Shown here in pieces: positions 30,466 through 62,386 of a DNA stretch of 64,000 bases; the first letter of the stretch is position 1; each line of letters starts with the position of its first letter. Location: sequence record OP557969.1; one strand, written 5' to 3'. The notes under the pieces were generated by a model. It saw only the letters and a list, made by a program, of their open reading frames with translations. It was not told the origin of the DNA and ran no database searches. The translations under genes and the position numbers were made by a program.

Positions 30466-30708
30466 ATGAAAGTACTATCTGAATTACAAATGGGACAGAG
30501 ATTTAATAAGTACTATCATTTACTGAAACCTATACAGAGGATTAAATGTTCTTATGATGAGAAACAGGTTTTAATTTATGAGCACAAGTTCTTTGTATCA
30601 TTAGGTACGAATCATCAAGAGTACTATTTGAAGTTGTACTTGATTACATTAATAGATTTAATTCACTATAAAACCAAACAAGCTAATAAAGAGAAATATG
30701 AAAACTAA
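30466..30708 (+). CDS. family B paralog
   Basis: LGTNHQE. Confidence 0.85.
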   Translation: MKVLSELQMGQRFNKYYHLLKPIQRIKCSYDEKQVLIYEHKFFVSLGTNHQEYYLKLYLITLIDLIHYKTKQANKEKYEN

Positions 30709-31042
30709 TATACAACTCAAGGTGTATAAATCCTATGAACATATATATATCAAAAGTAGTCTATGTAGAGATGTAATGGACTACAAGGGTAAGCCATTCA
30801 CAATTACGTATGATTCTTATATTAATGATTTATATATATCATTTGTTAATTACGAAAATAAAATATACAAGCACGTTGATATTAAAGATTTAAGTACTTT
30901 ATCTGAAGAGGAATACTTTCAAGAATCATTAGTATGGGATTTAGAATTTCCTATGCCATTAGTACATAAAATGATAGTACTAATGAAAGAAGCTAAACAG
31001 AAGCCTAATGGTGATTATGAAGAACACATCGTTGAGTATTAA
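30698..31042 (+). CDS. family C paralog (short type)
   Basis: LSEEEYFQESLVWD. Confidence 0.85.
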   Translation: MKTNIQLKVYKSYEHIYIKSSLCRDVMDYKGKPFTITYDSYINDLYISFVNYENKIYKHVDIKDLSTLSEEEYFQESLVWDLEFPMPLVHKMIVLMKEAKQKPNGDYEEHIVEY

Positions 31043-31258
31043 ATGAAAAGATTATCATACAAAGATTACACCAATCTTATCAGGACTTTACAACCAGAAA
31101 TTAGAAGAATTAATTCTCTTCCTATATCTAATGAAGAATGTTCAGTACTGAAAGATGAGTTAATCTTAAAACACACAGTAGGAACAAACTATCAAGCTGA
31201 TAGTGTTCGATATTTAATTTGGGGGTTGATGTGTCAAATAAAGTCCAAGTGCTATTGA
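31043..31258 (+). CDS. family B paralog
   Basis: VGTNYQA. Confidence 0.85.
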   Translation: MKRLSYKDYTNLIRTLQPEIRRINSLPISNEECSVLKDELILKHTVGTNYQADSVRYLIWGLMCQIKSKCY

Positions 31259-31322
31259 CAGTACTTGACGGAGCTTTTCATTACTGATATAGTACACTAA
31301 CGTTAATCATAGGGTAGAAATT

Positions 31323-31568
31323 ATGTTAAAATTTTTAAATTTCCTTATCGTCTTGTGTATTGTTCTTGGGATTGCACCGTTTGTACTGGTGTATATGGAT
31401 TCAGATGAAATGCAAAAGATGAATTGCACAAGGACAGGACAGAGTAGAGAAGAGACGATTCTTATGCCTGTTACGGTTATTGTTAACAACATGCCCATTA
31501 CAAACATGGTCCCTACCCTAACGACAACGTACCAGTACTCTTGTACAGACGGGGAGAGGTGGAGATAA
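31323..31568 (+). CDS. N-terminally anchored membrane protein
   Basis: hydrophobic N-terminus, two Cys; upstream TTGAC promoter. Confidence 0.75.
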   Translation: MLKFLNFLIVLCIVLGIAPFVLVYMDSDEMQKMNCTRTGQSREETILMPVTVIVNNMPITNMVPTLTTTYQYSCTDGERWR

Positions 31569-31891
31569 TGCGTAAGTTCAATTGTATTGTACGTAAGAAT
31601 TCATGTTATATTGTAGTAGCTGATTTTAATACAGGTTCTGGGTTGAAGATATTTGAGTACAGAAAATGTAATAATTCTTTTCATTGGAAATTAGGTGCAA
31701 GAAAAACAAAAACAATTTCAGTACCGAATTTATGTTCTATCTCTGAAGAAGAAGAGTTTCAGTACATGTTAGTACATGATGTTTCTTTAGGATTTACATT
31801 TGGAGATATGAAGGAAGTACAAAAGCAGATGATTGCACATTGTCATCTTCCAAAGAATTTTGTTCAACACGTATGTGAATTCCACATATAA
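31568..31891 (+). CDS. family C paralog (short type)
   Basis: ISEEEEFQYMLVHD. Confidence 0.8.
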   Translation: MRKFNCIVRKNSCYIVVADFNTGSGLKIFEYRKCNNSFHWKLGARKTKTISVPNLCSISEEEEFQYMLVHDVSLGFTFGDMKEVQKQMIAHCHLPKNFVQHVCEFHI

Positions 31892-31900
31892 GAGAATAAT

Positions 31901-32212
31901 ATGAAATTTAATATAGCAAAAACATCGAGTATATGTATTTTTGGTTATGCAGAAGAGTTAGGTGATATTGACATTCTTTTGTACAAAAAGGATGGTGTTA
32001 TGCATTTCAAGTACCAAGATGAAGAGGCAGACAATTATCCTTTACCTAATTTAGTACAAATACAGGAAGAGGAATTATTCCAGTACAGTTTAGTATACGA
32101 CATTGATATTTGCACGATGCCAGTATTAATTAATATACAAAAAGTGATGCTCGATATGTATGATAAGCTAATACAAGGTATGTCAGGGAGGATCATTGAA
32201 ATCGATATATAA
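31901..32212 (+). CDS. family C paralog (short type)
   Basis: IQEEELFQYSLVYD. Confidence 0.85.
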   Translation: MKFNIAKTSSICIFGYAEELGDIDILLYKKDGVMHFKYQDEEADNYPLPNLVQIQEEELFQYSLVYDIDICTMPVLINIQKVMLDMYDKLIQGMSGRIIEIDI

Positions 32213-32408
32213 GAATTTACCTAATGCATATATGTTGAAGTACAAAGAGTTTATTAAAGATGTATATGTAGATCCTTTCAATATAAAATTATCAGAGTTC
32301 GATGTATTATTTTATCTAGGGACAATAGTACAGGACCAATACGTTAATAATCTAATAAGGTGTTTGAAAAAGGAGATACAATGCAGACCCAAATGTACAA
32401 AAAAATAA
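32196..32408 (+). CDS. family B paralog
   Basis: LGTIVQD. Confidence 0.75.
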   Translation: MKSIYKNLPNAYMLKYKEFIKDVYVDPFNIKLSEFDVLFYLGTIVQDQYVNNLIRCLKKEIQCRPKCTKK

Positions 32409-32644
32409 ACCGTTATTTGTATGCATCAAAGTACAGGGATTTTTGTTTACAAGGAGGTGAGGACGATTTCGGTCTGAGGTTATCGGAATTTAATATGTTA
32501 TTTTATCTTGGTACATCCGTACAAGAAGAAATGGTTCAGAAATTTCTCAATAACCTTGTACAAAAAATTAATATTCAAATTATGATGCATAAATTACAGA
32601 ATGAGATAAATGAATATGAATCTAGAAATAGTTCAGGATCTTAA
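32381..32644 (+). CDS. family B paralog
   Basis: LGTSVQE. Confidence 0.8.
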   Translation: MQTQMYKKINRYLYASKYRDFCLQGGEDDFGLRLSEFNMLFYLGTSVQEEMVQKFLNNLVQKINIQIMMHKLQNEINEYESRNSSGS

Positions 32645-33005
32645 AAAAGTAATATTTCTTTTGAATACAAGAAGCTCTTTATATAAGGAGTTCAAAGATA
32701 AGGATAGTTCTTTTAAACCAGTATGTATAGAATTCAATGATTTAATTACAGATGCATTGTTTGAATTTTCCGAGAAATATCAAGATACAGTGTTTGGTGT
32801 TAGGAATGCTATTCATCCAATTACAGGCACAAGGAAGATAACGTTATCTCATTTTACATTTGACAATAAAGATTTATTCAGTTATAATCCCAGTACATCT
32901 TTATATTTTATTCCAAAAGGAGACAAGAATAGTCCGATTCATTACGGATGGATTATATCTTATGTAGTGCAAGGAAAGGAGTATCCTATCAAATGGCACG
33001 ATTAG
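32610..33005 (+). CDS. hypothetical protein
   Basis: 131-aa coupled ORF. Confidence 0.7.
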   Translation: MNMNLEIVQDLKKVIFLLNTRSSLYKEFKDKDSSFKPVCIEFNDLITDALFEFSEKYQDTVFGVRNAIHPITGTRKITLSHFTFDNKDLFSYNPSTSLYFIPKGDKNSPIHYGWIISYVVQGKEYPIKWHD

Positions 33006-33145
33006 GACAGGAAGATTATAGTTTAAATATATTATTAAGAAATATTAATGCGGATTATTGTGTATGGGTTAAGAATCGAGACATGATGTATTATGATTTT
33101 TATTTAGATTATGCCATCAAACGCTTTTTAAGAGAAGAATATTAA
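32993..33145 (+). CDS. small hypothetical protein
   Basis: AAGGAG RBS before MARLG. Confidence 0.55.
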   Translation: MARLGQEDYSLNILLRNINADYCVWVKNRDMMYYDFYLDYAIKRFLREEY

Positions 33146-33329
33146 TGAAAGTGGTTAATACAAAAGCAATAAATGATTTAAATGATTCTTTATTAGTAAG
33201 TATTAAGTTGTATTATAATATTCATTTAAAGGGTGGTATTAACGATTTTAGTTATTACTTAAGTGCAATATCACAAGAGCATTTAAATTATCAAGATCAT
33301 TTATTACATCCAAATCATTAAGGCAAATT

Positions 33330-33890
33330 ATGAATGAGATAGAGTTATTATCACACAAGATTAGTACAATAGCTACAGTACTGAACAACAAAAATAAAGT
33401 ACATAGTTCCTTTTTAAGAATTAATAAAGTTGGTAGTAGTTTATATTTGGAAGTAAAAGCGGGTTTTGCAGGACAGTACAATGATAAAATCAAAGAAGAA
33501 GTTAAGGGAAATGAAGATGCTTTCATTGAGGTTTGTGCAACAGTTGGTTCAAATCCAATTTCAGTATCACCGTTAATGCGAAATGAAAATTCAGAATTTG
33601 ATTCCAGTTTCGAAGGTTATTTGTGGTACAATTATGGTGATAATTATTTTATATATCAGAATTCCAAAACGAATTATAGTGAAGAAGGTATAAAATTCAT
33701 TGATCCTTACAATGAAGCAGAAGTATTTCAGAAATCCCTAATATACAATACAAATCAAATGAAGTATCTTATGTTGTTTAGTACAATGCATTTGAATCCA
33801 TTGAAAGATAATTTAAAATTTTTCATTCGTTTAGAATTAGTTGATATTACTTATGATCTTTTAATCCAAGGAAGTAGTTATGAAGTATAA
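33330..33890 (+). CDS. family C paralog (long type)
   Basis: NEAEVFQKSLIYN. Confidence 0.8.
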   Translation: MNEIELLSHKISTIATVLNNKNKVHSSFLRINKVGSSLYLEVKAGFAGQYNDKIKEEVKGNEDAFIEVCATVGSNPISVSPLMRNENSEFDSSFEGYLWYNYGDNYFIYQNSKTNYSEEGIKFIDPYNEAEVFQKSLIYNTNQMKYLMLFSTMHLNPLKDNLKFFIRLELVDITYDLLIQGSSYEV

Positions 33891-34194
33891 AATGATGTAT
33901 ACACCATCATTAGTATATGTAGAATTAGAATCAAATGATAATGGGTGGAATTTCATTAAACATATCGATACCAATACATGGTACATGGCTCACTTGGATA
34001 ATAATGTGGTATCAGACCATTTTATGGATTTCAATATCTTAGATGAAGATGAATTTTTCCAAATGCAATTGGTGCTTGACACAAATGGTTTTGATATGGT
34101 ATTATTAAAGAATATACAGAAAGCTGTTGATGAATTAATAGCTGAACATAATTTGAGCGAAATAAGGATTAGTTATGACCTCGAAGTACTGTGA
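33880..34194 (+). CDS. family C paralog (short type)
   Basis: LDEDEFFQMQLVLD. Confidence 0.8.
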   Translation: MKYKMMYTPSLVYVELESNDNGWNFIKHIDTNTWYMAHLDNNVVSDHFMDFNILDEDEFFQMQLVLDTNGFDMVLLKNIQKAVDELIAEHNLSEIRISYDLEVL

Positions 34195-34525
34195 GTTTGA
34201 AATTAATAAGTTAAGAGAATGGTTTTATAATATTGAAATTGAGGCCATTCCTTATCATACATATGAACAAAGTGATTTACAATGTATTGATATTAGGGAG
34301 TTGTACAAATATTATCAAAGTGCGTTAGAGATGCATAAATTATTTTTGAGTACGGATTTCTTTATGCAGTATAATTTTGAGGAATATAATAATTATAACT
34401 TAGTACAGAAATACGTAGTAGCAAAGTACATGTACATTCAAGGTATTAAAGGTTGTATTGAATTCAATACTGTTCTTGCTTTAGTTGAGGTAATTTTATG
34501 TACAGCATGTGCATATCTAATTTAG
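34175..34525 (+). CDS. hypothetical protein
   Basis: coupled ORF. Confidence 0.7.
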   Translation: MTSKYCEFEINKLREWFYNIEIEAIPYHTYEQSDLQCIDIRELYKYYQSALEMHKLFLSTDFFMQYNFEEYNNYNLVQKYVVAKYMYIQGIKGCIEFNTVLALVEVILCTACAYLI

Positions 34526-35016
34526 AGTTTAGTTTAGATGCAGCCTTTAAATTTGCACATAAGATAGAAACAATATATAGTTTTTTTAGTGAAGTTTATG
34601 AAGTTTGTGCTAAACGATATATCGATACAATAGACATTAGCAATAAGTTCGATGTATGGCACAAAACAATCCAAAGCAAAAAGCAGTGTGCAGCAGTTTT
34701 TAGTGTTTTATCATTTAATCCCAGCAATTGTTACCCAGAGAAGCATGAACGTTATCCCAATGACGACATGTGGTTTGTGTACAAAGAAGATGCTGATATG
34801 TCGTCATTTGAAGTTCCTGATAATTTTGATATCAGTGATTTAACAGAAGAGTGGTGGTTCCAGCAGAATTTAGTACATGATGATATTGATTTATTTTTCT
34901 ATATCGTGTTCAAAATACTTTATCACAACAATATAGTTAAAGATAGTGTATCGTTTTCATGTCTATATATTGATGAGTTGTTCGAAGATATCAAAAATCT
35001 CAAGCCTGTATCGTAA
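34498..35016 (+). CDS. family C paralog (long type)
   Basis: LTEEWWFQQNLVHD. Confidence 0.8.
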   Translation: MYSMCISNLEFSLDAAFKFAHKIETIYSFFSEVYEVCAKRYIDTIDISNKFDVWHKTIQSKKQCAAVFSVLSFNPSNCYPEKHERYPNDDMWFVYKEDADMSSFEVPDNFDISDLTEEWWFQQNLVHDDIDLFFYIVFKILYHNNIVKDSVSFSCLYIDELFEDIKNLKPVS

Positions 35017-35031
35017 GATATGGGCTTTTTT
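35002..35031 (+). terminator. intrinsic terminator
   Basis: AAGCCTGTATC-GTAA-GATATGGGCTT and T-run. Confidence 0.75.
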
Positions 35032-35087
35032 GTTTGACTCAAGTACAAATGAATGGTACAATGTGAAATCATTTTAAGGAGAACCCT

Positions 35088-35636
35088 ATGGAAAATTTTC
35101 AAATACCACAAGATTACGATACAGCGAAAGAGATGGTACACAAGGTTCATTACATTTTTAATGAATTAATTATTGCAAATTCATCCTGTATGCAAATTGA
35201 GTTAAAGGGTATTAATAGTGAAGAAGTTTTTTTGGCTTCTCCAAGTTCAATTATTCCGTTGTATGGTATGGACCGTTTATGGTTCATGAGAGATGCACCA
35301 ATTGACAGGTACAAAATACAAAAAAAATCAGAGAATGATTTTCTTTATGATTATTTTAATATTTCATTACAAGCACACGATATAAGTACAATGAGTGCAG
35401 AGGAATATTTTCAGCACAGTACAGTGTATAGTCCAGAAGAAATCTTTGTTGTTATGCTTGTTGCAAAATTGAGTACTGTTGATTTTGGGACGTACCCAAA
35501 TAAATCATTCAAGATTATTATTCCTGCATTTGTTGATCTTTATGATTTCATTGTGCACAAGAAAGAAAGTACAGTGTACGATATGCAGCGTTCAAATATC
35601 AGTTTAATTGCAGTAAGTGCAGGGGAATTAAAATGA
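35088..35636 (+). CDS. family C paralog (long type)
   Basis: MSAEEYFQHSTVYS; AAGGAG RBS; upstream promoter. Confidence 0.85.
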   Translation: MENFQIPQDYDTAKEMVHKVHYIFNELIIANSSCMQIELKGINSEEVFLASPSSIIPLYGMDRLWFMRDAPIDRYKIQKKSENDFLYDYFNISLQAHDISTMSAEEYFQHSTVYSPEEIFVVMLVAKLSTVDFGTYPNKSFKIIIPAFVDLYDFIVHKKESTVYDMQRSNISLIAVSAGELK

Positions 35637-36241
35637 ACATAGACCAATTAATGAAGTACAGTAAAAGTACAGTTCCAGTACTAAGTAAAGTGTTAGATGC
35701 CTTCACTGCTAAGTACCCTGAAGGTTCAGAGTTAAATATTCCTTTTACTACACCAGGGATTGATGATACTTACATGGTACACATTGGTAGTTCAGGTATT
35801 GTTTTGAAGCAAAAGTACAGTGATAGTGAATATTATGGTTTGAAACTGGATAAAATTTCAGGAGAGAAGACACCTTTTGAGTTTTGGATTCCGAATAGTA
35901 TTGAATCATGGAATACACATATTAATAAGAGAGACGAAGGTAATATTTCTCTTGTAAATTATAAGGAAAAAAGATTTGACGTATTTTATTATTACAGTAC
36001 AGATACGTTTCCAGAAGAGATTTATTTAAATTCAGAGATGTATGAAGATATTGAATCATTTTTCTTTCAGTTATCATTGGTACATGATATCATGCCATTG
36101 CAAGCGTTCAGGGATGAAATAAATTTAGCGAAAGAGATTTCGGATATGTTACCTGAATTTAGTGTTCTTTATGGTAGTAGAGCTTTACCTGAAAATGTGT
36201 ATATAGAATTTATTTCTTGTGTTCAAGGATTGAATATATAA
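35633..36241 (+). CDS. family C paralog (long type)
   Basis: DIESFFFQLSLVHD. Confidence 0.8.
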   Translation: MNIDQLMKYSKSTVPVLSKVLDAFTAKYPEGSELNIPFTTPGIDDTYMVHIGSSGIVLKQKYSDSEYYGLKLDKISGEKTPFEFWIPNSIESWNTHINKRDEGNISLVNYKEKRFDVFYYYSTDTFPEEIYLNSEMYEDIESFFFQLSLVHDIMPLQAFRDEINLAKEISDMLPEFSVLYGSRALPENVYIEFISCVQGLNI

Positions 36242-36242
36242 T

Positions 36243-36437
36243 ATGAACGAAGATGATATCAAAAAAAGGCATACGAAGTTTGAACTGCTCCCTGACGAAA
36301 TCCACATTGATATAGTTAATTTTAACATCAAAGCGTCCTTGCATCCTATATCACAAGATGATTTTGACAACAGAGTGCTTAACATAGTGGTGATTTTGTG
36401 CTATAATCATTTCAGTGAATATTTTAACAAAAGATGA
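36243..36437 (+). CDS. small hypothetical protein
   Basis: coupled ORF. Confidence 0.65.
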   Translation: MNEDDIKKRHTKFELLPDEIHIDIVNFNIKASLHPISQDDFDNRVLNIVVILCYNHFSEYFNKR

Positions 36438-36966
36438 GGTACATATGTATCAGCACACGTACAATACATCATATGAGTATGGGTACAGCATTTTGAAGAT
36501 TATCAAAGCGTTAGAGGGTGGATTGCTTAGTCATAAGTACACCAGAGTAGGTGACAATTGGTTCAGAAATGATGATGATGAGTTCAGAAGTCATAAAATC
36601 GTTTACAGTAATAATTACAGTGCTAATTATCTTCAGGATGTGGTTATGTGCTTTGAATACGTGTTACAGTTCAGGGGTTCCATCAGACCAGAGTTAAGAG
36701 AACACATGTACATTCGATACCTACCAATGCTTGAGGATGAGAAATCAATATTCAATTCAGTACACCACAGAGTACGAGATAGAACATTCAGGAATATTTT
36801 GGAAGATGAAGCTGCCTATTTTCAGCGATCATTGATTGATGCTCCTGATGTGTTACAGATGCAGAATTTGTATAATGTATTAGATGCGAACATCGATACT
36901 GATATCTTTTTTTCCTTAAGTGATTATGAAACATGTTTGGAAGATTTAAAGGAAATAGGATTATGA
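36415..36966 (+). CDS. family C paralog (long type)
   Basis: EDEAAYFQRSLID. Confidence 0.8.
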   Translation: MNILTKDEVHMYQHTYNTSYEYGYSILKIIKALEGGLLSHKYTRVGDNWFRNDDDEFRSHKIVYSNNYSANYLQDVVMCFEYVLQFRGSIRPELREHMYIRYLPMLEDEKSIFNSVHHRVRDRTFRNILEDEAAYFQRSLIDAPDVLQMQNLYNVLDANIDTDIFFSLSDYETCLEDLKEIGL

Positions 36967-37307
36967 GTGGATTTACAGTATATATAGTAAACGTCAGTAC
37001 AGATGGTAGTTTAATTGAATTTGATGTAGTTGATGACGATGATAATGCATATGGTATTAAGGTGCAAGACAATGTTGTGCAGTTCAGTACAAGAACAAAT
37101 TACGAAAATCCAGTTCCTGTTCCTAATTTCATAGAAGACGAAGCTGTACGATTCCAATACGAAACTGCCTTTGACAATATAGCGATGCATATTATTATGC
37201 AACACAGTTTAGTTCAATTAGTTCCTTTATTTAGACAAAATGTATATGTACATGAATTGTCGATTAATAACGTTCAAAGTTCCGTTTTGTTCGGCACAAA
37301 TATGTAA
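36963..37307 (+). CDS. family C paralog (short type)
   Basis: EDEAVRFQYETAFD. Confidence 0.75.
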   Translation: MSGFTVYIVNVSTDGSLIEFDVVDDDDNAYGIKVQDNVVQFSTRTNYENPVPVPNFIEDEAVRFQYETAFDNIAMHIIMQHSLVQLVPLFRQNVYVHELSINNVQSSVLFGTNM

Positions 37308-37316
37308 GGAAGGATA

Positions 37317-37859
37317 ATGAGTTTATTAGATACCATAGAAAAAGACAGAAGTGCCATTAAGAGATTAAAAAATCTGGTTCTGTGTATTGTGAACAACGTT
37401 GAAAAGTTTGAAGTCCAAGGAAGAATTGGTGATATTTCACATACAGGAATAAAATCCCTGAAGTCAGATTTATTAATTCATAAGGAAGATAAATTATTAT
37501 TTGTATTGAGTTCAGATTTATTGGTTGCAAGTAATGGTTTCAATTCGGTATCAACACAAGATGGTAGTACTGGATTATATCTATCACAGGGTGTACAGAC
37601 GAATGAACATAAGTGTTTTAGTTCAAGAGTACAGAATCCCTTTAAGTTTAATACAGAACAAGCTACAGAGCTTTTTGAGGCTTCAGAAGAGATGTTATTT
37701 CAGTACAAAATGGTCTATACAGATTTTGAAATACGATGCCTATACGCTGTTAAGCATTATGTACAAGAGTTCGAAGATTTAAATTATCTTTTAGTTCGAA
37801 CGAATACGAAGAACATTGACATATTAGAAGATTACATTTCAACAGTTGTTAGTGTGTAA
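37317..37859 (+). CDS. family C paralog (long type)
   Basis: ASEEMLFQYKMVY. Confidence 0.8.
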   Translation: MSLLDTIEKDRSAIKRLKNLVLCIVNNVEKFEVQGRIGDISHTGIKSLKSDLLIHKEDKLLFVLSSDLLVASNGFNSVSTQDGSTGLYLSQGVQTNEHKCFSSRVQNPFKFNTEQATELFEASEEMLFQYKMVYTDFEIRCLYAVKHYVQEFEDLNYLLVRTNTKNIDILEDYISTVVSV

Positions 37860-37872
37860 TGGGATGTTGCTT

Positions 37873-38034
37873 ATGAAGGAGTTATTTGATGAACAGTTCA
37901 ATGTATTAATGGATAATATTCTTTTTTATAGCCTTGGTAGTAAACGAGGAAATCGTGCTTACAATATAGATTACATATTAACTGTGTTGAGTTCACAGTA
38001 CACATATGCTGTGCAGAGGACATATTATGAATAG
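37873..38034 (+). CDS. small hypothetical protein
   Basis: short ORF in operon; start uncertain. Confidence 0.55.
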   Translation: MKELFDEQFNVLMDNILFYSLGSKRGNRAYNIDYILTVLSSQYTYAVQRTYYE

Positions 38035-38212
38035 TTATAGTGGTGTTGCTAAGGAGAAGTTAAATTGTAGTTTAGATTTTGGCTTAAATGATTTTCTTAC
38101 GTGCACAATGTTCAGGAATGATGATTATGAACAATCCGTAATTTCGTTGTATAGATATTTTGAAATAATTTACACAAGATACCTTAGAAGGTTAGAGGGA
38201 TTGGAATTATGA
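38027..38212 (+). CDS. small hypothetical protein
   Basis: GAGGA RBS. Confidence 0.6.
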   Translation: MNSYSGVAKEKLNCSLDFGLNDFLTCTMFRNDDYEQSVISLYRYFEIIYTRYLRRLEGLEL

Positions 38213-38427
38213 TTTATGAACAAAAAGTACCAAGTGGTTATAGTGTTGATGGTTTTGAATTCATGATGGATTTGGTTTTAAAGAATACATTAGTAGTACA
38301 CCGTGCATTACCGGACCATGTAGATAGTGCGGTTCAACGAATAATGAATGTATACGAGATGACGAGTCGAAAGCTTTGTGCAATGAAAAGGATTGAAGAA
38401 ATCAAGCGTTCTAGGATGAATAATTAG
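38209..38427 (+). CDS. small hypothetical protein
   Basis: ATGA coupling. Confidence 0.65.
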   Translation: MIYEQKVPSGYSVDGFEFMMDLVLKNTLVVHRALPDHVDSAVQRIMNVYEMTSRKLCAMKRIEEIKRSRMNN

Positions 38428-38567
38428 AGACGTTTCGTATGATGTATTCAAACGTACAATAAAACAATACTATATAACTTTTTATAATTGATATTTTTTA
38501 AAAAATACACAATCACAACGTGCTCCTTTTATTGGAATTTACCTTATTAATTATAGTTGAGGGGAAG

Positions 38568-39663: not shown

Positions 39664-39664
39664 T

Positions 39665-40188: not shown

Positions 40189-40189
40189 T

Positions 40190-41097: not shown

Positions 41098-41099
41098 TA

Positions 41100-45241: not shown

Positions 45242-45246
45242 ATCAA

Positions 45247-50333: not shown

Positions 50334-50400
50334 GTGTTTTAGGCTTTACATAAGCATTCAGGTGTGTTATACTTGATTTTAAATAAAATTGGAGGAATAT

Positions 50401-53612: not shown

Positions 53613-53624
53613 CGGAGAAACTAC

Positions 53625-54176: not shown

Positions 54177-54775
54177 GAAAAAGTTACCAAGAAGCTATTG
54201 ACCTAATTCGAGAAGTTATTAAGGTTGCACCAGGTGCAATAGCATTCAAGAAGTCTCTATATAAGAAATATGGTCCCATGTCAAGTATGTGCTGTCAAAA
54301 GAAACGTAGTAAATTCACTACGCAGTACTGGCATGACTCTATTATCTTGAGTAATGAACATCAGCGTATTTTAACAATCGAATCAGTAGATAATCAATAT
54401 GGGGAAGGATTGATTTGTATTCCTGACTATGATGAAATTAATTTCAATTGTGGGGATTATGAGACAACATTATTATTACACGAGGGTTATCCTGAAGGTG
54501 ATGTAATGGCAGAGTATAATCCAAAAACAAAAATACTGAAACGTGGTATACAGTTCAAAATCGATAACAAAGATGATGTGGAAGCTGCACTAATGCAACT
54601 GAGTACAAGCGAACCTATCTCTATTGATGTAGAAGAGTTATGGGGAATCATTTCAGTACTTAATGAGTGTTATAAAATTAAATCATTGCATAAGTACTCT
54701 ATAATTTTACATACTAATTGTGCAATGATAAAATGTAAGAACATACAAGAGATGGTGGTTCCAGATGAACTTTAA
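54173..54775 (+). CDS. family C paralog (long type)
   Basis: VEAALMQLSTSE. Confidence 0.75.
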   Translation: MRKSYQEAIDLIREVIKVAPGAIAFKKSLYKKYGPMSSMCCQKKRSKFTTQYWHDSIILSNEHQRILTIESVDNQYGEGLICIPDYDEINFNCGDYETTLLLHEGYPEGDVMAEYNPKTKILKRGIQFKIDNKDDVEAALMQLSTSEPISIDVEELWGIISVLNECYKIKSLHKYSIILHTNCAMIKCKNIQEMVVPDEL

Positions 54776-55349
54776 AGAAATAGAAAGTAAAATTAAGTAC
54801 TTCAAAGATATCAAAAAACTTTGGGAAAAGTATAAAATTGTTTATCAATTCCAAGATGATGATACTGTTCAAACCATTGATATTAGTATTCGTGTGAAGT
54901 TCAAGAATGGTAGTTATGGTGAAGTTAAATTGAATTCTATGGGTGTATATCTTAGAGACTATGATGGTTCCACTCTTGCACAATTTGACTTCACACCTGA
55001 CCCTGATGATATGTTACTGAGTGAAATCAATGCGTATGACCTTGAGATGTTTGGTGGGAAACCTTTATTATTCCGCTTATCAGATGAATGGGATGAGGTT
55101 TACTACACATACAAAGATGGAGTGATTCGAGACGTGAATGATGAGGTTGTAAATGATATGGAAGAACGTCTATTCCAAGAATCATGTGTGTCATCTGAGT
55201 CATATACATACCAATACCTACTTGACATGTTCGATTTGTATAGTAAAATAGATTCAGAAATGGGTACATTGGGTATTCATTATCTCACAATAAATGACTA
55301 TGCTCAACTCGAAACCGCAGTGAAAGCATTATCTAAAGTTCTGAAATAG
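54765..55349 (+). CDS. family C paralog (long type)
   Basis: MEERLFQESCV. Confidence 0.8.
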   Translation: MNFKEIESKIKYFKDIKKLWEKYKIVYQFQDDDTVQTIDISIRVKFKNGSYGEVKLNSMGVYLRDYDGSTLAQFDFTPDPDDMLLSEINAYDLEMFGGKPLLFRLSDEWDEVYYTYKDGVIRDVNDEVVNDMEERLFQESCVSSESYTYQYLLDMFDLYSKIDSEMGTLGIHYLTINDYAQLETAVKALSKVLK

Positions 55350-55358
55350 GAATGAATT

Positions 55359-55772
55359 ATGAAACTGTATCATGCGAGTACTGTAAAAATTGATAACTTT
55401 TATATCCCGTATGGTGGCCTTCATATGGGAGGTAAACACAGTGCACTTGAAGCTGCATTACGCAAGCTAAGAAGCCCACTGAACGTTGTTGCCGCTGATA
55501 CAGTATACTTGCATACTTTAGAAGTTGATGTTGACAACGTGCTTCTATGGGAGGATTTGGGTAGTGATGATGAGTGGCGTTCACTAATTGAACATTGTAA
55601 TTCTAAAGGTTACGATGCTGTTCAATACACAAATGAATACGAGCCGGATAATGTTCCTAGTTATATGATTTGGGATACGTCTAAGGTTCGCATTGTCGAA
55701 GTTGATGCTATGCATATGGATGATGCAGAAATGATCATCGAAGATTTCCTTGATGAATATGAAGGTGTATAA
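55359..55772 (+). CDS. ADP-ribosyltransferase-fold protein (PolyVal-ART-like)
   Basis: LYHAS start, GLHMG strand, GYDAVQY and SYMIWDTSKVRI terminal motifs. Confidence 0.6.
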   Translation: MKLYHASTVKIDNFYIPYGGLHMGGKHSALEAALRKLRSPLNVVAADTVYLHTLEVDVDNVLLWEDLGSDDEWRSLIEHCNSKGYDAVQYTNEYEPDNVPSYMIWDTSKVRIVEVDAMHMDDAEMIIEDFLDEYEGV

Positions 55773-56290
55773 TGATTGAACCTATGACAGTACTAGCACG
55801 TACTAAATTATTATTGAAGATTGGTGAGATATTAACTGATATTTTGTACAGTGAGATTGATATACATGAATTATGCATTATACAACCATGGGAATTAACC
55901 AAATTCTCTGCGTTCTATCGTTTATCATATAAAGGGGAAACAGTTCTGGACTGGAACCCCAAAGCCAGATTTATGGAGTATGCAGCTTTATATGGAACAT
56001 GTGGTGGAATAACAAATGATTTTAAAGAAATTAAAACTCAAACAGCGTCACATGAATTTAATGATTTATTATATCCAGAATTTAAGTTAACAGAAGAATC
56101 ATTATTCCAGCACTCATTAATTTTAAAAGATCTTAATGATTTAGAGTACTACAAAGAATTAGTAGATATTTTTATGAATACACGACTTTCAAAAGATATT
56201 GTGATATTCTGGTATACAGAGCATGTTACGGAGGAATTGCTTACTGAATTTCTTCTAAATATGACAGCTATAAAGGAGAAGTTATGTTAG
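55772..56290 (+). CDS. family C paralog (long type)
   Basis: LTEESLFQHSLIL. Confidence 0.8.
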   Translation: MIEPMTVLARTKLLLKIGEILTDILYSEIDIHELCIIQPWELTKFSAFYRLSYKGETVLDWNPKARFMEYAALYGTCGGITNDFKEIKTQTASHEFNDLLYPEFKLTEESLFQHSLILKDLNDLEYYKELVDIFMNTRLSKDIVIFWYTEHVTEELLTEFLLNMTAIKEKLC

Positions 56291-56757
56291 ATATTTTAGG
56301 AAACATCGATACTGCAAATTATTTTATCCAAGACGCACTGTTTAATACACTACAAAAAGGTTTAGAAGTTCGTCACAATGTATACCAAGGTGATGGTTAT
56401 TTCGTTGATATTATTGAGGCACGAAAGAATACGTTTAATCTTAACGTTACGACGCTTGGAAGACAGAACATTGCACGAATTTTAGTAAGTAAAGATGAAA
56501 TTGTATTAAGATACAGTGCTAAGTTTATGCTGACTTACAAGAAAAAAACTGACATGTTCAGTACTAATTTATTTGATGAGCCATTTGACCTTGAAGATAT
56601 TGAAGCTACTTTCTTCACTCAAAGTACTATGGTAAAATACACTGATGTTCAATTTTCAGCAGACGTTATGTCTGAAACATTACAAATGATCAAGGTATTA
56701 TTTTATGCTTTTGAGCAATTTAGAGAAGAAAGAAATAAGGTTAACAACCACAGATGA
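56284..56757 (+). CDS. family C paralog
   Basis: DIEATFFTQSTMV. Confidence 0.75.
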   Translation: MLDILGNIDTANYFIQDALFNTLQKGLEVRHNVYQGDGYFVDIIEARKNTFNLNVTTLGRQNIARILVSKDEIVLRYSAKFMLTYKKKTDMFSTNLFDEPFDLEDIEATFFTQSTMVKYTDVQFSADVMSETLQMIKVLFYAFEQFREERNKVNNHR

Positions 56758-57118
56758 ACTAATAGAGGCGATTACTAAGGATTCAAAATACCATAAAGGG
56801 ATTCGTCTATACTTTATAGATACTGGCTCAATGGAAGGTACATACATTTATGGCTCACAATCTTTGTCTTATGTTGTAATACCAAATAAAAATGTAAAAA
56901 TCTTTTTAGGTTCAAGTAAAAAAGCGTTCTTGACAGTTAATGACAACAGTGTTATTATGAATTCCTTGGGTCATGACAAGGTAGAAATTGATCTAAACAC
57001 ATTAGAAGAAATGGATTTTTTTCAGTACGAGTGTTTAGGCGTTGACTTACATGGTATCAGTAGTGATATGATAAAATCATTAATTAAATATTTCAAGGGT
57101 GTTTATAAATGTATCTAA
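56705..57118 (+). CDS. family C paralog
   Basis: LEEMDFFQYECL; start uncertain. Confidence 0.7.
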   Translation: MLLSNLEKKEIRLTTTDELIEAITKDSKYHKGIRLYFIDTGSMEGTYIYGSQSLSYVVIPNKNVKIFLGSSKKAFLTVNDNSVIMNSLGHDKVEIDLNTLEEMDFFQYECLGVDLHGISSDMIKSLIKYFKGVYKCI

Positions 57119-57606
57119 CAAAATCGATGAAAAATTCATTTGATAAGATCAAGAGTGTTCTTGGTGGTGAGCATATTACTAGTGTGACTCAAACGGCTGA
57201 CCAAATTCAATGCAGTTCAAATGATTATACTGTAATTCTAGGTTTACATAGTCTACGTTTGACAATAGTAAATAATATTGACAACACTGCAATTGTAATA
57301 ACACCATGCCATATCAAAAATGAAAATGGTGTATATCTTCATCATATGGGAACAGTATTTCATATTTTTAATACAAATGAAAATATTGTTAAAGAATACA
57401 ATACACTTAATATTGATTCAGGTGAATTATTTCAAATGAGCACGTTGTACTCATGTAATTTTACAGATACTTCACGTATTTTACCATTCTTCTTAGAAAT
57501 TATTAAGAAAATGGAAAATTTAAAACGTGAATACAATAAAGAAATGGTTCCTGAAGCTATATTAAATATTACTAATGCTATAGAGAAGTATAATTCAGTG
57601 ACTTAA
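57109..57606 (+). CDS. family C paralog
   Basis: IDSGELFQMSTLY. Confidence 0.8.
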   Translation: MYLTKSMKNSFDKIKSVLGGEHITSVTQTADQIQCSSNDYTVILGLHSLRLTIVNNIDNTAIVITPCHIKNENGVYLHHMGTVFHIFNTNENIVKEYNTLNIDSGELFQMSTLYSCNFTDTSRILPFFLEIIKKMENLKREYNKEMVPEAILNITNAIEKYNSVT

Positions 57607-57648: not shown

Positions 57649-58122
57649 ATGGAGATTAAAACCGTTGAAAATGGGGAAATTGATGACATTTTAGAGTTGG
57701 ATGCCTTCAAAGTTCATGATATAATGTTCAATGTGAAAGACATTATTCAATGTCTGTTTTTGTGCAGCAAGACTATGCATGACTTTTTTCACAACCCAAA
57801 TACAAATGTTTTTATACTAACAATCAGTACTGAAAGCTCGTTCATCATGGGTATGCCTATGAGTACGAATGAACAGTATATTGATTGTGTTATTCGCAAT
57901 AACGATAGTATTACACCTCAATCTGAAGTACGTAAAAAGAAAAACACTTACACAATCAAAGATGATAAAATTATGATGTGCTGTAGTAAGGGGTTTATAT
58001 TAGATAATTTTATTGTCAAAGATAGTTATCATGACTTTAAAGTTTCCGAAAACCAATCTAATGTAGTTCTTTATGCAAGTGACATAGAAAGTCTAACAGT
58101 AAAAGATCCCAGTTTGGAGTAA
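57649..58122 (+). CDS. hypothetical protein
   Basis: AAGGA RBS, 157 aa. Confidence 0.75.
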   Translation: MEIKTVENGEIDDILELDAFKVHDIMFNVKDIIQCLFLCSKTMHDFFHNPNTNVFILTISTESSFIMGMPMSTNEQYIDCVIRNNDSITPQSEVRKKKNTYTIKDDKIMMCCSKGFILDNFIVKDSYHDFKVSENQSNVVLYASDIESLTVKDPSLE

Positions 58123-60258: not shown

Positions 60259-60266
60259 TAAACCAT

Positions 60267-60298
60267 AGGACGGGATATAATATCTCGTCCTTTTTTTT
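60267..60298 (+). terminator. intrinsic terminator
   Basis: AGGACGGGATA/TATCTCGTCCT and T8. Confidence 0.85.
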
Positions 60299-60310
60299 GT
60301 CTGGAGATAT

Positions 60311-61159
60311 ATGAAACTTTATCTAATCGTTGACTACAGTAAGGGTTATTATGACTACGCAGAAGAATCTGAAGGGTATTGCTCGTCTACTAATGTCAAT
60401 GTACGCACCAGTAGTACACATGAGCATGAATCTATTACAAATCTAAAAGATTTTATTGCATATCGAGCATTTGAAAAGAATTTCTGTCGTAGTAGATATT
60501 CGAAGTTTGAGTACCCGTTAATTGATGTTCCTGATGAATTGATGTTCCAGTTAATGCTCACTGGAGTACAAGATTATGATTACATTGCGTACAATCACAT
60601 TACTAAGAAAATTTATATCGGTACGTCAACGCATGACATTTCTATGTATGCATCATGCCCCGATGATCGAATGAATGATAGAAAATCATACTATAGTGGT
60701 TCAGTTGGTTCAAATGTTCCATCAAATAAAAATTTATTCTTTGAGTACGAGTTTGATAATCATCGAGGGAAAACAGACCGAGAAGATTATTGTACTGAAA
60801 TTAATAGTTCAAATGGATATGAAGAAGTGAAAGAAGCAATAATGCCATATATCCTAGACAAGTACTACAAAGATTTTCAGTACTGTAGTAATTTTCTAAT
60901 CCGAAATTCTATCAAAATCGGTCGTCAAAGCACTGCATTCTCTAAGTACTACAATGATTCCCCTGTTGCTGAAAATGAATACTGTAATGTTCTCTCAATC
61001 CCACGTGAAGATATGGTATTCATGTTCACATCTTTCATTGAAGATGATGAGTTGTATGTAAAAAACAAGCACAGGTTCATGCTAAGTAATATTGAGGTTA
61101 TGAGAAGCTTAAGTGCAGATATATTAACGAATTTCACTGAAAAAACAGAATACAACTGA
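60311..61159 (+). CDS. hypothetical protein with internal family C-like motif
   Basis: 282 aa; VPDELMFQLML. Confidence 0.75.
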   Translation: MKLYLIVDYSKGYYDYAEESEGYCSSTNVNVRTSSTHEHESITNLKDFIAYRAFEKNFCRSRYSKFEYPLIDVPDELMFQLMLTGVQDYDYIAYNHITKKIYIGTSTHDISMYASCPDDRMNDRKSYYSGSVGSNVPSNKNLFFEYEFDNHRGKTDREDYCTEINSSNGYEEVKEAIMPYILDKYYKDFQYCSNFLIRNSIKIGRQSTAFSKYYNDSPVAENEYCNVLSIPREDMVFMFTSFIEDDELYVKNKHRFMLSNIEVMRSLSADILTNFTEKTEYN

Positions 61160-61187
61160 GACATACCATAAGTTTATGATATAATAT

Positions 61188-61220
61188 AAGGTGACAGCAG
61201 AATATGTTGTCACCTTTTTT
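61188..61220 (+). terminator. intrinsic terminator
   Basis: AAGGTGACAGCA/TGTTGTCACCTT and T-run. Confidence 0.8.
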
Positions 61221-61760
61221 AATCCTGAAAGGTTCCTTTAAAGGAAACGTTTAAAACCTAATCCACTCGAAAATGTAGAGGGTAGATGAGTAGTCCTTTC
61301 AGTACGAACAGCAGATGAAACCCGTTAGATGATGGCATAGTTTGAACCACTCACGGCAATGCGGCTGTATAAAGAACTCCAATAGGATAAAGAGAGTTCC
61401 TCGATAGACATATAAGGATCGCACCTTACCAATTATCTAAGGGAGATTTCATGAGAAATATGCGGTCGGAATTATACAATATAGTTGCGTCCAAATTTTG
61501 TGAAATCAAATACAAGTACTGGTCATATGGTATTTGTATTATGTGTTGGGATGTTTAAGACCAACGACCGTTGCTACAAGAACCGCGATAGAGAGAAACC
61601 GAGCAACCCGCTTTCGTCTCGTATGAGAATTCGTGATATGAACTATGTGAAGACCACCAGCGTCAAATTTTTTTGTTCTTTCCCCTGCGGGGGGATGAAA
61701 TATGCTCAAACAAACCTCGTCAATATTAATTAAAAGAATTATTATTACTTGTAGAATTTG
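61221..61760. ncRNA. candidate long structured non-coding element
   Basis: about 540 nt without a credible ORF, GC-richer than flanks, several hairpins. Confidence 0.3.
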
Positions 61761-61843
61761 ACATGCGTAGCATGGATAATTCTACTGGTGTTGATGTAAT
61801 CAACATCACGTATATATTCATTGAAGTTTCCACAGGAATAATG

Positions 61844-62386
61844 ATGGCATTTATTAAAAAACAAAAAACATTTACCTATAAGACTTTGGATTTTATTGAT
61901 TGCGAAAATCAAACACAGAATGAAGATAACTTTACTGGATTTGTTGTTATTAAAGAAAAAGGATGTATTTCGTATATCAAGGAATTACAAAATGGAATTG
62001 AAGTAACGTCGGTTAAATTACTTCCTACACAAAAGCCAACAATATCCAAAGCACAATATGGTAATTATTTTGAGGAAAGATATAGTAATAATTTAATAAG
62101 TGTTAAGGCTCATATTATAAAAGGAGAACTAGAAGGAGAATATAGAAAATTCAATCCACAAGGAAAATGTGTTTGGGTTAAATACTTCAATTCAGGAAAT
62201 GATGTAACATCTGAAATAATTGAGTTTTTAGGTTTAACATGTACCCCTGAAACTCTTCATGACTACAAATTTAATGCTGAAGAAGAGTTTAATCTGATGA
62301 TGCGTTATGGAACACATTTTAAATTTTTATATGAATATAACATTGACAGTGGTGTTTTTGATAGGATAGTACAAAACTGTCTTTAA
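61844..62386 (+). CDS. MORN-variant-repeat-like protein with family C-like motif
   Basis: GELEGEYRKFNPQGKCVWVKYFNSG; NAEEEFNLMMRYG. Confidence 0.65.
   Translation: MAFIKKQKTFTYKTLDFIDCENQTQNEDNFTGFVVIKEKGCISYIKELQNGIEVTSVKLLPTQKPTISKAQYGNYFEERYSNNLISVKAHIIKGELEGEYRKFNPQGKCVWVKYFNSGNDVTSEIIEFLGLTCTPETLHDYKFNAEEEFNLMMRYGTHFKFLYEYNIDSGVFDRIVQNCL

Follow-up and report, generated by a model that had tools for sequence, protein, structure and literature searches.

Related arrays in other phages

Tandem arrays comparable to the one described here are carried by RaK2-like jumbo phages, i.e., RaK2, Munch, GAP32, and phages of Yersinia and Erwinia. RaK2 ORF412-439 and Munch_054-081 are syntenic arrays carrying the same motif, with approximately 26-29 copies in these two phages vs approximately 43-50 in the present one.

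The present array belongs to Escherichia phage ph0011, a giant E. coli phage of the Asteriusvirus with a 348-kb genome. The window, i.e., the whole stretch of DNA that was analysed, comprises bases 1-64000 of it. At 30698..57606 (+ strand, approximately 27 kb), a small and so far uncharacterised protein fold recurs in about 45 diverged copies that are marked by an FQ motif: 43 supported members, approximately six ORFs with a decayed motif, and a few unrelated small ORFs. The best reading is an old uncharacterised gene family rather than a set of proteins with a detachable docking or packaging tag. On balance, we favor a very large, ancient tandem paralogy that encodes early, non-virion, probably host-interaction proteins.

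The supported members are all on the + strand, 103-202 aa in length, and share merely 15-20% identity. They are small, acidic, soluble proteins (median pI 4.9). In Foldseek searches against BFVD, the matches were uncharacterised RaK2-like jumbo-phage proteins only (TM ≤0.76 at 18-22% identity), and structural and sequence relatives were found solely as similar tandem arrays in these phages. No relative of the family was found in Pfam or PDB, where the best Foldseek matches reached E 0.11-0.28 and TM <0.3.

Members of the array

An HMM iterated within the window recovered 37 ORFs, and six further ORFs, starting at 36933, 50964, 53031, 53625, 52538, and 48688, were added via a wider HMM or hhalign. 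A motif-like stretch alone was found in seven ORFs (43203, 44639, 50389, 52113, 54173, 56284, and 442). With 43 supported and approximately seven possible members, the preliminary count of about 50 proteins is fair. Membership usually rests on the window-iterated HMM together with codon-level motif coordinates, and this applies below unless another basis is given. All members are on the + strand.

The first member, 30698..31042 (short type, 114 aa; HMM E 5.7e-21), carries the motif SEEEYFQESLVWD at 30902-30940. It is followed by the short-type members 31541..31891 (116 aa, motif 31742-31780) and 31901..32212 (103 aa, motif 32063-32101), the long-type 33330..33890 (186 aa, motif 33711-33749, phrog_19795), the short-type 33880..34194 (104 aa, motif 34042-34080), and the long-type 34498..35016 (172 aa, motif 34843-34881, phrog_34516). 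Next to these are 35088..35636 (182 aa, motif 35394-35432), 35633..36241 (202 aa, motif 36050-36088), and 36415..36966 (183 aa, motif 36805-36843). The ORF 36933..37307 (124 aa, motif DEAVRFQYETAFD at 37137-37175) is a marginal member by the wider HMM (E 1.8e-4), and 37317..37859 (180 aa) has its motif at 37683-37721.

Two quartets of adjacent members are recent tandem duplications. One, at 38520..40006, is of short type (38520-38945, 38942-39301, 39298-39663, and 39593-40006), and the other, at 40190..42010, is of long type (40190-40660, 40657-41097, 41100-41567, and 41567-42010).

Beyond the quartets, the short-type 42007..42321 (104 aa, motif 42184-42222) precedes two long-type members, 42321..42764 (147 aa, motif 42594-42632) and 42761..43216 (151 aa, motif TEEGYFQGSTLYN at 43037-43075). 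Further members are 44052..44648 (198 aa, motif 44433-44471), the short-type 45247..45606 (119 aa, motif 45430-45468) and 45596..45931 (111 aa, motif 45767-45805), and the long-type 45939..46475 (178 aa, motif 46308-46346) and 46535..47008 (157 aa, motif 46838-46876). The long-type 47005..47475 (156 aa, motif SEEMYFQESLIHD at 47314-47352) was modelled with AF2. After it lie 47465..47827 (short type, 120 aa, motif 47657-47695), 47811..48224 (137 aa, motif 47997-48035), and 48212..48691 (long type, 159 aa, motif 48521-48559).

In 48688..49233 (181 aa), Q is replaced by S (DMERIKFSLSY), and its membership rests on hhalign (76%, E 2.3e-5, 52 columns in register). The member 49230..49802 (190 aa, motif 49563-49601) has a cross-genus ortholog in RaK2, and 49795..50313 (172 aa, motif 50140-50178) adjoins it. 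The ORF 50964..51548 (194 aa, motif 51348-51386) is marginal (wider HMM E 3.8e-4), and 51535..52113 (192 aa, motif 51919-51957) follows. Three members were placed by hhalign probability, i.e., 52538..53047 (169 aa, motif 52871-52909; 53%, E 1.4e-4), 53031..53612 (193 aa, motif GEEQYFQLSTIHE at 53400-53438; 94.5%), and 53625..54176 (183 aa, motif 53991-54029; 86%). The remaining members are 54765..55349 (194 aa, motif 55158-55196), 55772..56290 (172 aa, motif 56090-56128), 56705..57118 (137 aa, motif 57005-57043), and the last one, 57109..57606 (165 aa, motif DSGELFQMSTLYS at 57415-57453), which also has a cross-genus RaK2 ortholog.

Conservation of the motif

In the 43 supported ORFs, the motif consensus is [STD]-E-E-x-[YLF]-F-Q-x-S-[LT]-[VIL]-[YHFW]-[DSTN]. 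The strict pattern [DE][DEA]..FQ.[STN][LTCM][VILM] gave 26 matches, all within 30.6-57.7 kb, vs 0.01 (maximum 1) in residue-shuffled proteins. The motif lies where the preliminary description had placed it, on the + strand, and its position two-thirds along the protein also agreed (motif F at median 67% of protein length).

A sequence logo was built from 196 retrieved sequences. F and Q were present in 196/196 across phage genera, E-E was kept in 81% and 68%, S was kept in 83%, and conserved hydrophobics occupied 6/13 motif positions. This invariance is partly ascertainment because the HMM score depends on the motif. Compared with phAPEC6 orthologs, the members are under purifying selection (median dN/dS 0.26), and the motif has the lowest value of three regions (0.14, vs 0.28 in each flank). 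The conservation of F, Q, and E-E exceeds the usual need of a helix cap, at 15-20% identity and across genera, and a functional site is therefore possible.

Selection acts on the protein, since the codons at motif F, Q, and S match background usage (TTT 26/TTC 17; CAG 24/CAA 19) and Ser is encoded by both AGY (18) and TCN (12), codon families that are said to differ at all three positions. The uneven dS of the phAPEC6 orthologs (0.13 to >2) suggests that the array recombines often, which would suit a DNA- or RNA-level element within the genes, e.g., a recombination hotspot, promoter, or RNA structure. However, synonymous variation at the invariant residues is free, so conservation at the nucleic acid level was rejected, and we give this explanation next to no chance.

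The motif also resembles a protease processing site, reading E-x-x-Y-F-Q then x-S. The site of the potyviral NIa (TEV) protease is E-x-x-Y-x-Q followed by S or G. The family motif is similar at P6, P3, P2, and P1, and ORF 42761 reads EEGYFQGS, but P1' is variable in the family. Proteases need extended and accessible sites, whereas this stretch is predicted to be helical within a well-packed domain (pLDDT >90), with both halves in one fold. No NIa-type protease is known from these phages, the scan covering the 64-kb window. Cleavage at the motif is hardly credible.

Predicted fold and the role of the motif

AF2 gave a confident single domain for the long member 47005..47475 (pLDDT 91.8, pTM 0.88) and for the short member 38942-39301 (pLDDT 86.3, pTM 0.83). 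The elements come in the same order in both models: a beta-meander leads to the motif helix, which a tight corner connects to a long helix, and a strand follows. The motif forms an N-capped helix with a corner into the next helix inside one compact domain, and pLDDT is 93-96 across residues 101-120. In the model of 47005..47475, S104 is the N-cap, residues 105-112 are helical, and D116 N-caps the next helix. These models suggest that the motif is buried in the domain.

Sequence similarity between subfamilies is limited to approximately 33-80 residues around the motif. The short-subfamily HMM aligns to long members over approximately 80 residues and vice versa, hhalign of long vs short type gave 94.6% probability, and the homology reaches approximately 55 residues upstream of the motif, into the beta-sheet. 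A profile comparison between subfamilies with the motif masked found nothing, so the single fold is drawn from the two AF2 models, HMM cross-hits, and Foldseek rather than from direct superposition.

All members would share one alpha/beta fold. Its common core would comprise an antiparallel beta-meander of 5-6 strands, then the motif helix, which a tight corner would connect to a long helix, and a beta-strand after that. Long-type proteins would carry one extra helix at either terminus. The two architectures of the preliminary description, short and long, agree with the AF2 secondary structure. In the motif, [S/T/D] would be the helix N-cap with E-E in the first helical turn, while [Y/L/F]-F, [L/T]-[V/I/L], and the next aromatic residue would make hydrophobic core contacts. 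S would terminate the motif helix, and the subsequent D/S/T/N would cap the following helix. The motif would be the best-conserved structural element of the fold, and because it joins the sheet to the helical layer it would have changed least, while the remaining sequence drifted below detectable similarity. As a built-in helix of a shared fold, it argues for an old gene family and against a detachable tag.

The proteins had been described earlier as otherwise unrelated-looking apart from one constant element, and this holds. What does not is a short docking or sorting signal on variable domains, in view of the motif's place inside the compact domain, its hydrophobic positions, and the upstream homology. 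A motif that serves as a structural part of one common fold is the first half of what that description had itself set against docking.

A docking site could still lie on the fold. The polar face (E, E, Q, and S) would then hold all paralogs on one common partner, as in an adaptor or effector library. This partner could come from the host or be a conserved protein of the phage, e.g., the 157-aa product of 57649-58122. The conservation of F, Q, E-E, and S across genera, the low dN/dS of the motif, and the extreme conservation of this single-copy gene at the array end would fit. No conserved basic partner of E-E is visible in the long-type alignments, which hints that E-E is exposed. On the other side, the motif helix sits within a compact domain, in contrast to a linear motif placed in a terminal or disordered stretch, nearly half of its positions are hydrophobic, its polar residues suit N-cap and C-cap positions, and part of its invariance comes from motif-based retrieval. 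Moreover, at least one supported member lacks Q, i.e., 48688..49233, yet purifying selection on it persists (dN/dS 0.22), so a change of the motif is tolerated, and several ORFs of the array have a decayed motif. A docking partner shared by all paralogs is therefore unlikely.

Somewhat more doubtful is a module for small-molecule or nucleotide binding, or for sponge- or decoy-type homo- or hetero-oligomerisation. In that case, F, Q, S, and E would be lining residues of a pocket or interface, with the ligand or oligomer partner varying from paralog to paralog. Small, acidic, soluble proteins with an invariant aromatic beside invariant polar residues would suit it, and the family alignments show no enzyme-like pattern of conserved residues outside the motif. 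However, the PDB search matched no known sponge or binding fold. Known sponges are single-copy and are not known from 45-copy arrays, which counts against a sponge.

For the ancient paralogous family that we favor, a diversified effector-like library is the most plausible functional guess. The products may form a cytoplasmic, diversified host-interaction set for take-over or counter-defence, in which a constant scaffold would present a different beta-sheet surface in each paralog.

Transcription and virion proteomes

The termini of phage fEgEco12 have been determined (PMC13070987), and by mapping to that phage, the array starts approximately 6 kb inward from where the left direct terminal repeat ends. 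In the related phage PA5oct, the terminal-repeat genes are early (PMC7318152). The array genes are co-oriented, with frequent stop-to-start overlaps. Between 24 and 64 kb, sigma-70-like sites of at least 11/12 numbered 12 on the + strand and 0 on the - strand, with 2.2 expected. They lie at 32860, 34076, 36379, 37171, 39527, 46472, 47848, 55222, 56930, 59459, 63246, and 63969, and a strong match within the array is 36379..36407 (+). Terminator-like hairpins, one between members at 35002..35027 (+) and a second at 50312-50331, indicate that the array is split into transcription units. Early expression by the host RNA polymerase appears probable.

No family orthologs (gp404c-gp466c) were among the 62 proteins of the phAPEC6 virion proteome, and none were in the structural clusters of RaK2, whose virion proteins map to two other genome clusters. 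The absence from two published virion proteomes contradicts the products as virion components. It also disagrees with the proposal of capsid targeting, packaging, or export, in which the motif would direct proteins to the virion or the cell exterior. The sole point in favor of this proposal is its logic, namely that variable proteins bear one constant tag. The capsid-targeting sequence of T4 is an N-terminal tag, whereas the family motif is internal, within a folded domain. In addition, no hydrophobic signal or transmembrane segments were evident in the family proteins (GRAVY negative). Sorting by the motif is thus very improbable.

Possible members and neighboring genes

Six ORFs inside the array (+ strand) are possible members. 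The ORF 43203..43739 (178 aa) has the motif FDEQCFQLSCTDP at 43593-43631, aligned in register by hhalign at 1% probability. The others would be decayed copies, i.e., 44639..45241 (200 aa, motif-like DEDVMFTNDL, hhalign not significant), 50389..50964 (191 aa, LFNANLIH), which has a BLAST link to 50964-51548, 52113..52541 (142 aa, LALQYQVLY, in register at 10%), 54173..54775 (200 aa, AALMQLSTSEP, in register at 7%), and 56284..56757 (157 aa, EATFFTQSTMV, 1%).

The ORF 442..1104 (+, 220 aa), which the preliminary description had included, is a possible outlying decayed member. Its motif-like stretch SDEEEFMYSTVID, with Q replaced by M, aligns in register, but the hhalign probability is 2% (E 0.02). 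It has its own phrog_29152 and sits at the opposite end of the unique genome region. The ORFs 60311-61159 and 61763-62386, likewise included before (the latter as the 61844 region), are dropped, as they gave no family HMM hit even at E<10, had an hhalign probability <1%, and each belong to a separate PHROG. The earlier size range of roughly 100-280 aa holds for the members at its lower part, but ORFs of 282-284 aa fall outside the family.

The array is closed by a single-copy, non-member gene at 57649..58122 (+), and this highly conserved gene ends the array in three genera. Its 157-aa product shows 98.7% identity to that of phAPEC6 with dN/dS 0.012, 60% to Munch_081, and 64% to RaK2 ORF440.

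Genomic Position of the FQ Array

In megablast, the segment 38000-50000 was 100% identical to OP557969.1 (348,217 bp) with unchanged coordinates, so the window corresponds to bases 1-64000 of Escherichia phage ph0011. Thirty-five further Asteriusvirus records matched the same segment at 85-89%. All credible genes were placed on the + strand, with gene starts set mechanically as longest-ORF starts, and no tRNAs were found in the 64-kb window. The genome termini were determined experimentally in phage fEgEco12, which has a direct terminal repeat of 20,993 bp (PMC13070987). By alignment to fEgEco12, the repeat maps to approximately 3.4-24.7 kb of the window, which places the FQ array, i.e., the tandem paralogous genes at 30.7-57.6 kb, just inside the left terminal repeat. 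It is thus a tandem array of paralogs near a genome terminus, and with approximately 27 kb it occupies roughly 8% of the 348-kb genome.

Motif and Family Membership

The 13-residue motif [STD]-E-E-x-[YLF]-F-Q-x-S-[LT]-[VIL]-[YHFW]-[DSTN] was present in 43 + strand ORFs at 30698-57606. The strict pattern gave 26 matches, every one within 30.6-57.7 kb, compared with 0.01 in residue-shuffled proteins. The logo of window members and database representatives (n=196) was [S32/T27/D18]-E81-E68-x-[Y37/L30/F10]-F100-Q100-x-S83-[L53/T41]-[V40/I35/L18]-[Y42/H17/...]-[D40/S/T/N], and hydrophobic residues were conserved at six positions. The F of the motif was located at a median of 67% of the protein length.

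An HMM iterated inside the window gathered 37 ORFs, and a wider HMM with hhalign added the ORFs starting at 36933, 50964, 53031, 53625, 52538, and 48688. In ORF 48688, the Q of the motif is replaced by S. Seven more ORFs, including ORF 442 (SDEEEFMYSTVID), carried only motif-like remnants. The preliminary description had counted about 50 proteins with the motif about two-thirds along their length and quoted example strings; count, position, and strings agree with the 43 motif ORFs, the seven remnants, and the 67% given here. Membership of ORFs 60311 and 61763 in the family was not borne out by HMM, PHROGs, or hhalign, and ORF 442, listed in that description, is only a possible decayed copy.

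By BLASTP, the proteins of the array fall into many small groups. In profile-profile comparison, 19-29 columns were aligned between subfamilies when the motif was included, and no signal was left between them when it was masked. With deeper alignments, the long and short types, i.e., the two architectures found among the members, were aligned by hhalign with 94.6% probability (E 7e-8) over only 33 columns, and subfamily HMMs covered approximately 80 residues of the opposite type, comprising the last sheet strands, the motif, and the next helix. These HMM cross-hits and the hhalign result give statistical support to homology between subfamilies past the 13-residue motif. The proteins had been called otherwise unrelated-looking, which holds at the sequence level, but the conserved core in the HMM alignments is longer than 13 residues.

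Members were already contained in phrog_12674, 9317, 15629, 13866, 34516, 19795, 22855, 34636, and 38478, all without assigned function. They matched their PHROG profiles over the full length (E 1e-49 to 1e-110), and several of these PHROGs were joined by weak cross-hits. PHROGs records the family as many groups without links between them and does not note the motif and fold that unite it. In Pfam, none of the 37 members matched any family, the sole exception being a chance-level RINGv hit (E 0.004). The PADLOC anti-phage defence profiles likewise gave no family match among the 37 members, only two isolated hits (E ~0.003-0.006).

Predicted Structure and Role of the Motif

The long type was modelled with AF2 on ORF 47005-47475 from a 73-sequence alignment (pLDDT 91.8, pTM 0.88). 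The model consists of a helix at 8-24, six strands in 48-95, helices at 105-112 and 117-132, a strand at 139-142, and a helix at 143-155. In this model, the motif helix is N-capped by S104 and has E105-E106 in its first turn and Y108-F109-Q110 further along, S112 ends the helix, L113-I114-H115 form a linker, and D116 N-caps the next helix; the pLDDT of the motif helix is 93-96. The short type, modelled on ORF 38942-39301 from a 44-sequence alignment (pLDDT 86.3, pTM 0.83), has five strands, a helix at 66-76 containing F70 and Q71, a helix at 84-100, and a strand at 110-113. Both models share the order of sheet, motif helix, long helix, and strand, and the long type has extra terminal helices as had been guessed from the sequence. 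The short and long types would have the same fold, judging from these two models and from indirect matches. In Foldseek searches, no structural relatives in PDB were found for either model (best E 0.28 and 0.11, TM <0.3), and sequence-profile searches of PDB with the family were empty. Against BFVD, the long model matched only uncharacterised proteins of RaK2, GAP32, Yersinia phages fHe-Yen9-03/04, Serratia phage BF, and Asteriusviruses, and its target-normalised TM to RaK2 proteins of 124-140 aa was 0.53-0.69.

On the most economical reading, the family would be a case of ordinary paralogy with an undescribed alpha/beta fold. In the long model the motif is helical, and model and logo together place its polar residues at helix-cap positions. 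It would act as a structural hinge, in which cap residues stand at both helix ends and the hydrophobic stripe packs onto the sheet. The preliminary description had compared the motif to F-box proteins and other adaptor families, which have a constant docking module and a variable substrate domain. The FQ paralogs do combine a constant element with a variable remainder. However, in the AF2 models the motif forms a helix inside a single domain and is not an autonomous docking module, and the Pfam search of the 37 members gave no match to adaptor-domain profiles, including F-box.

The invariant E-E...F-Q..S helix could nevertheless be a docking surface by which more than 40 diversified early proteins engage one common partner. 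In that case, the undescribed fold would serve RaK2-like jumbo phages as the basis of a built-in combinatorial library of adaptors. The E-E, Q, and S residues are conserved across genera more strongly than capping alone usually explains, and no conserved basic partner for E-E is visible in the long-type alignments. The docking reading is still judged unlikely for four reasons. In the predictions the motif lies within a folded domain, and hydrophobic residues make up half of its positions. Moreover, the Q is missing from at least one supported member that is still under purifying selection, and the invariance is partly due to the way sequences were retrieved. Candidate partners would include a host hub protein or the ultra-conserved 157-aa protein closing the array in three genera. 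The latter is a single-copy gene product (57649-58122, phrog_16362), 98.7% identical to its phAPEC6 counterpart with dN/dS of 0.012, and 60% and 64% identical to Munch_081 and RaK2 ORF440, respectively; it is conserved far beyond any array member. It is a candidate for the common partner of the FQ family, or else for an essential early protein.

The motif E-E-x-Y-F-Q-x-S also resembles the recognition site of the TEV NIa protease, E-x-x-Y-x-Q↓S/G, and ORF 42761 reads EEGYFQGS at 43037-43075. A TEV-like protease site was rejected since the site is helical within a folded domain in the AF2 model, so that the resemblance is probably a coincidence. No cognate protease for an NIa/3C-type site was found in the window.

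Distribution in Related Phages

The profile search of 1.84 billion representatives recovered 144 proteins of 55-215 aa, of which one was a spurious repeat protein. FQ was present in all of the others except P0139, and the full motif surrounded it in nearly every case; no domain fusions were seen among them. P0080, a hit of 773 aa with 13 motif-like repeats, was rejected as a relative, being the translation of a tandem repeat. By tblastn, members were detected in 36 Asteriusvirus genomes, in Erwinia phage Hallingskeid, and in the Salmonella/Klebsiella Munch group.

In phage Munch, approximately 28 tandem ORFs of similar size (CPT_Munch_054-081) lie at 21-37 kb of the linear genome, and 18 of them were HMM matches at E<=0.01. 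The RaK2 array corresponds to ORF412-439, and the RaK2 and Munch arrays both carry the motif found here. The HMM matches per locus were 40 in this window, 29 in RaK2, and 18 in Munch, and the copy number varies between relatives, i.e., approximately 45 here versus 26-29 in RaK2 and Munch. Both the RaK2 and Munch arrays are followed by the same block, in which a 157-aa protein, a protein of approximately 290 aa, and more genes precede Dam and a cytidylyltransferase. In an uncultured relative, the members sit between Dam and an RNA ligase. From this distribution, the FQ family is clade-wide in RaK2-like jumbo phages. Both its position and its motif are retained in the E. coli, Salmonella, and Klebsiella phages of this group at least, and relatives by sequence or by structure were also seen in phages of Erwinia, Cronobacter, Yersinia, and Serratia.

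Evolution and Selection

The array is syntenic with that of phAPEC6, and the median dN/dS over 34 ortholog pairs was 0.26, close to the 0.27 of neighbouring genes. The pairs were 39-95% identical at the amino acid level, with dS of 0.13 to >2, and flanking genes were 97-99% identical; two members had no reciprocal best hit in phAPEC6. This unevenness of dS and identity suggests mosaic exchange, in which alleles may have been replaced by recombination. By region, dN/dS was 0.14 in the motif and 0.28 on either side of it, and no positive selection was seen in this crude regional comparison.

Recent duplications were limited to two quartets, 38520-40006 and 40190-42010. For most paralogs, the mutual distance is as large as the distance to copies of other genera, and a few clear cross-genus orthologs exist; the paralogs are therefore old and individually maintained. 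Codons at the invariant residues follow the background, and Ser is drawn from both codon families. This free synonymous variation, together with the use of both Ser codon families, excludes a DNA-level element behind the motif.

Predicted Expression and Absence from Virions

The FQ proteins are hydrophilic and acidic, with a median pI of 4.9 versus 6.5 in other ORFs. Strong sigma-70-like sites (>=11/12) numbered 12 on the + strand and 0 on the - strand, where 2.2 were expected, and several of them lie 8-190 bp upstream of start codons. Stop-to-start overlaps were found between many array genes. Terminal-repeat genes are expressed early in phage PA5oct (PMC7318152), and the equivalent region of phage CBB is suspected to be early. 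By the enrichment of the promoter consensus and analogy with PA5oct and CBB, we infer that the FQ genes are early.

The motif had also been proposed as a capsid-targeting signal, and this was rejected by two virion proteomes. None of the array orthologs gp404c-gp466c is among the 62 virion proteins of phAPEC6, the list of which is empty between gp347 and gp549, and the RaK2 virion proteins fall in two other clusters, away from the array. With the motif at a median of 67% of the length, it does not have the position of an N-terminal targeting peptide cut by the prohead protease. The position, promoters, and non-virion status of the FQ proteins point to probable early cytoplasmic host-interaction factors, which would present variable surfaces on a constant scaffold.

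Comparison with Known Systems

Terminal multigene families are known in large DNA viruses, i.e., MGF360/505 of ASFV and the terminal host-range families of poxviruses, and phage SPO1 carries a host-takeover module in its terminal redundancy. These may be the closest analogues, with the same genomic logic. Like them, the FQ array comprises dozens of diverged paralogs arranged in tandem close to one genome end, all in one orientation and encoding no structural proteins, with early-type promoters and a copy number that varies between related viruses. In contrast to them, most FQ paralogs are ancient and kept as cross-genus orthologs, with no rapid turnover, and Pfam and Foldseek gave no sequence or fold relationship to these families.

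The internal proteins of T4 have an N-terminal capsid-targeting sequence. These proteins resemble the FQ family in being paralogous phage proteins with a short conserved element, as does the inner-body paralog family of phiKZ, PF12699 (10.1101/2025.11.23.690004). However, the T4 and phiKZ proteins enter the head and are substrates of the prohead protease, whereas the FQ motif forms an internal helix and neither of the two virion proteomes contains FQ proteins.

The existence of many paralogues in RaK2-like phages was already published, i.e., approximately 10% of gene products in RaK2 and 22 ORFs in CBB. In the searched literature (RaK2, CBB, phAPEC6, Sharanji, fEgEco12, PA5oct, Iyer et al.), the FQ family, its motif, and its fold were not described, and no member has a name, Pfam family, solved relative, or phenotype. 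When the many PHROGs are joined into a single fold family defined by one signature, a large block of jumbo-phage "dark matter" becomes accessible as a unit, through an HMM, two confident models, and FQ to AA as the obvious mutant. If the members are host-takeover or counter-defence factors, they would be a ready-made panel of diversified binders and could help explain the host range of phages considered for therapy. If the motif is only structural, the signal peptide-like reading is removed and the region is an ordinary, though unusually large, case of paralogy.

Neighbouring Genes and Elements

The block after the array, 58280-63457, is syntenic with RaK2 ORF441-448 and Munch_083-091. It includes proteins of approximately 284 aa and 282 aa, a Dam methyltransferase (62403-62927, PF05869, E 7e-33), and a cytidylyltransferase-like protein (62924-63457, phrog_3041).

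On the other side, 31 ORFs of 61-95 aa make up a second paralog family (phrog_4148), located at 24757-30708, and also at 31043, 32196, 32360, 43717, and 43913. Its array runs head-to-tail from the exact inner edge of the predicted terminal repeat up to the FQ array. A third paralog family, nine ORFs of 60-77 aa at 1126-3082, lies where the window aligns with the right end of the fEgEco12 unique region.

At 3734-24765, at least 23 copies of a promoter cassette, AAAAAGTACTTGCA-N17-GTATAATGTTTTACAT, were found, mostly followed by a GGGGGAAnnGTTCCCCC hairpin, an AGGA ribosome-binding site, and ATG. The cassette is found only where the window maps to the direct terminal repeat, with essentially no copies in the FQ array. 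It appears to be a dedicated immediate-early promoter with its leader, serving almost all genes of the terminal repeat. A different element of 93 nt (GGGATTGACTCCGGTCAGTCCCTTTGCTATTATATA...) is present in three copies at 17177-17269, 20446-20538, and 23193-23285.

Within the terminal repeat, a 213-aa ORF (19806-20447) gave a sub-threshold Pfam match to protein kinase (E 0.005). Its counterpart is annotated as protein kinase in ph0011 and fEgEco12, and Munch_046, a "putative protein kinase", is similarly placed. The segment 19000-24000 had megablast matches in 79 phage records, including Campylobacter, Klebsiella, and Shigella phages, which indicates that some short piece there is widely shared. 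A tandem repeat whose period is 8 bp (ATGGCTAG / ACGGCTAA ...) lies at 4144-4295, close to where the genome is predicted to have its physical left end, and the GC skew changes sign at approximately 4 kb; the repeat and the skew change may be related to the terminus or to packaging.
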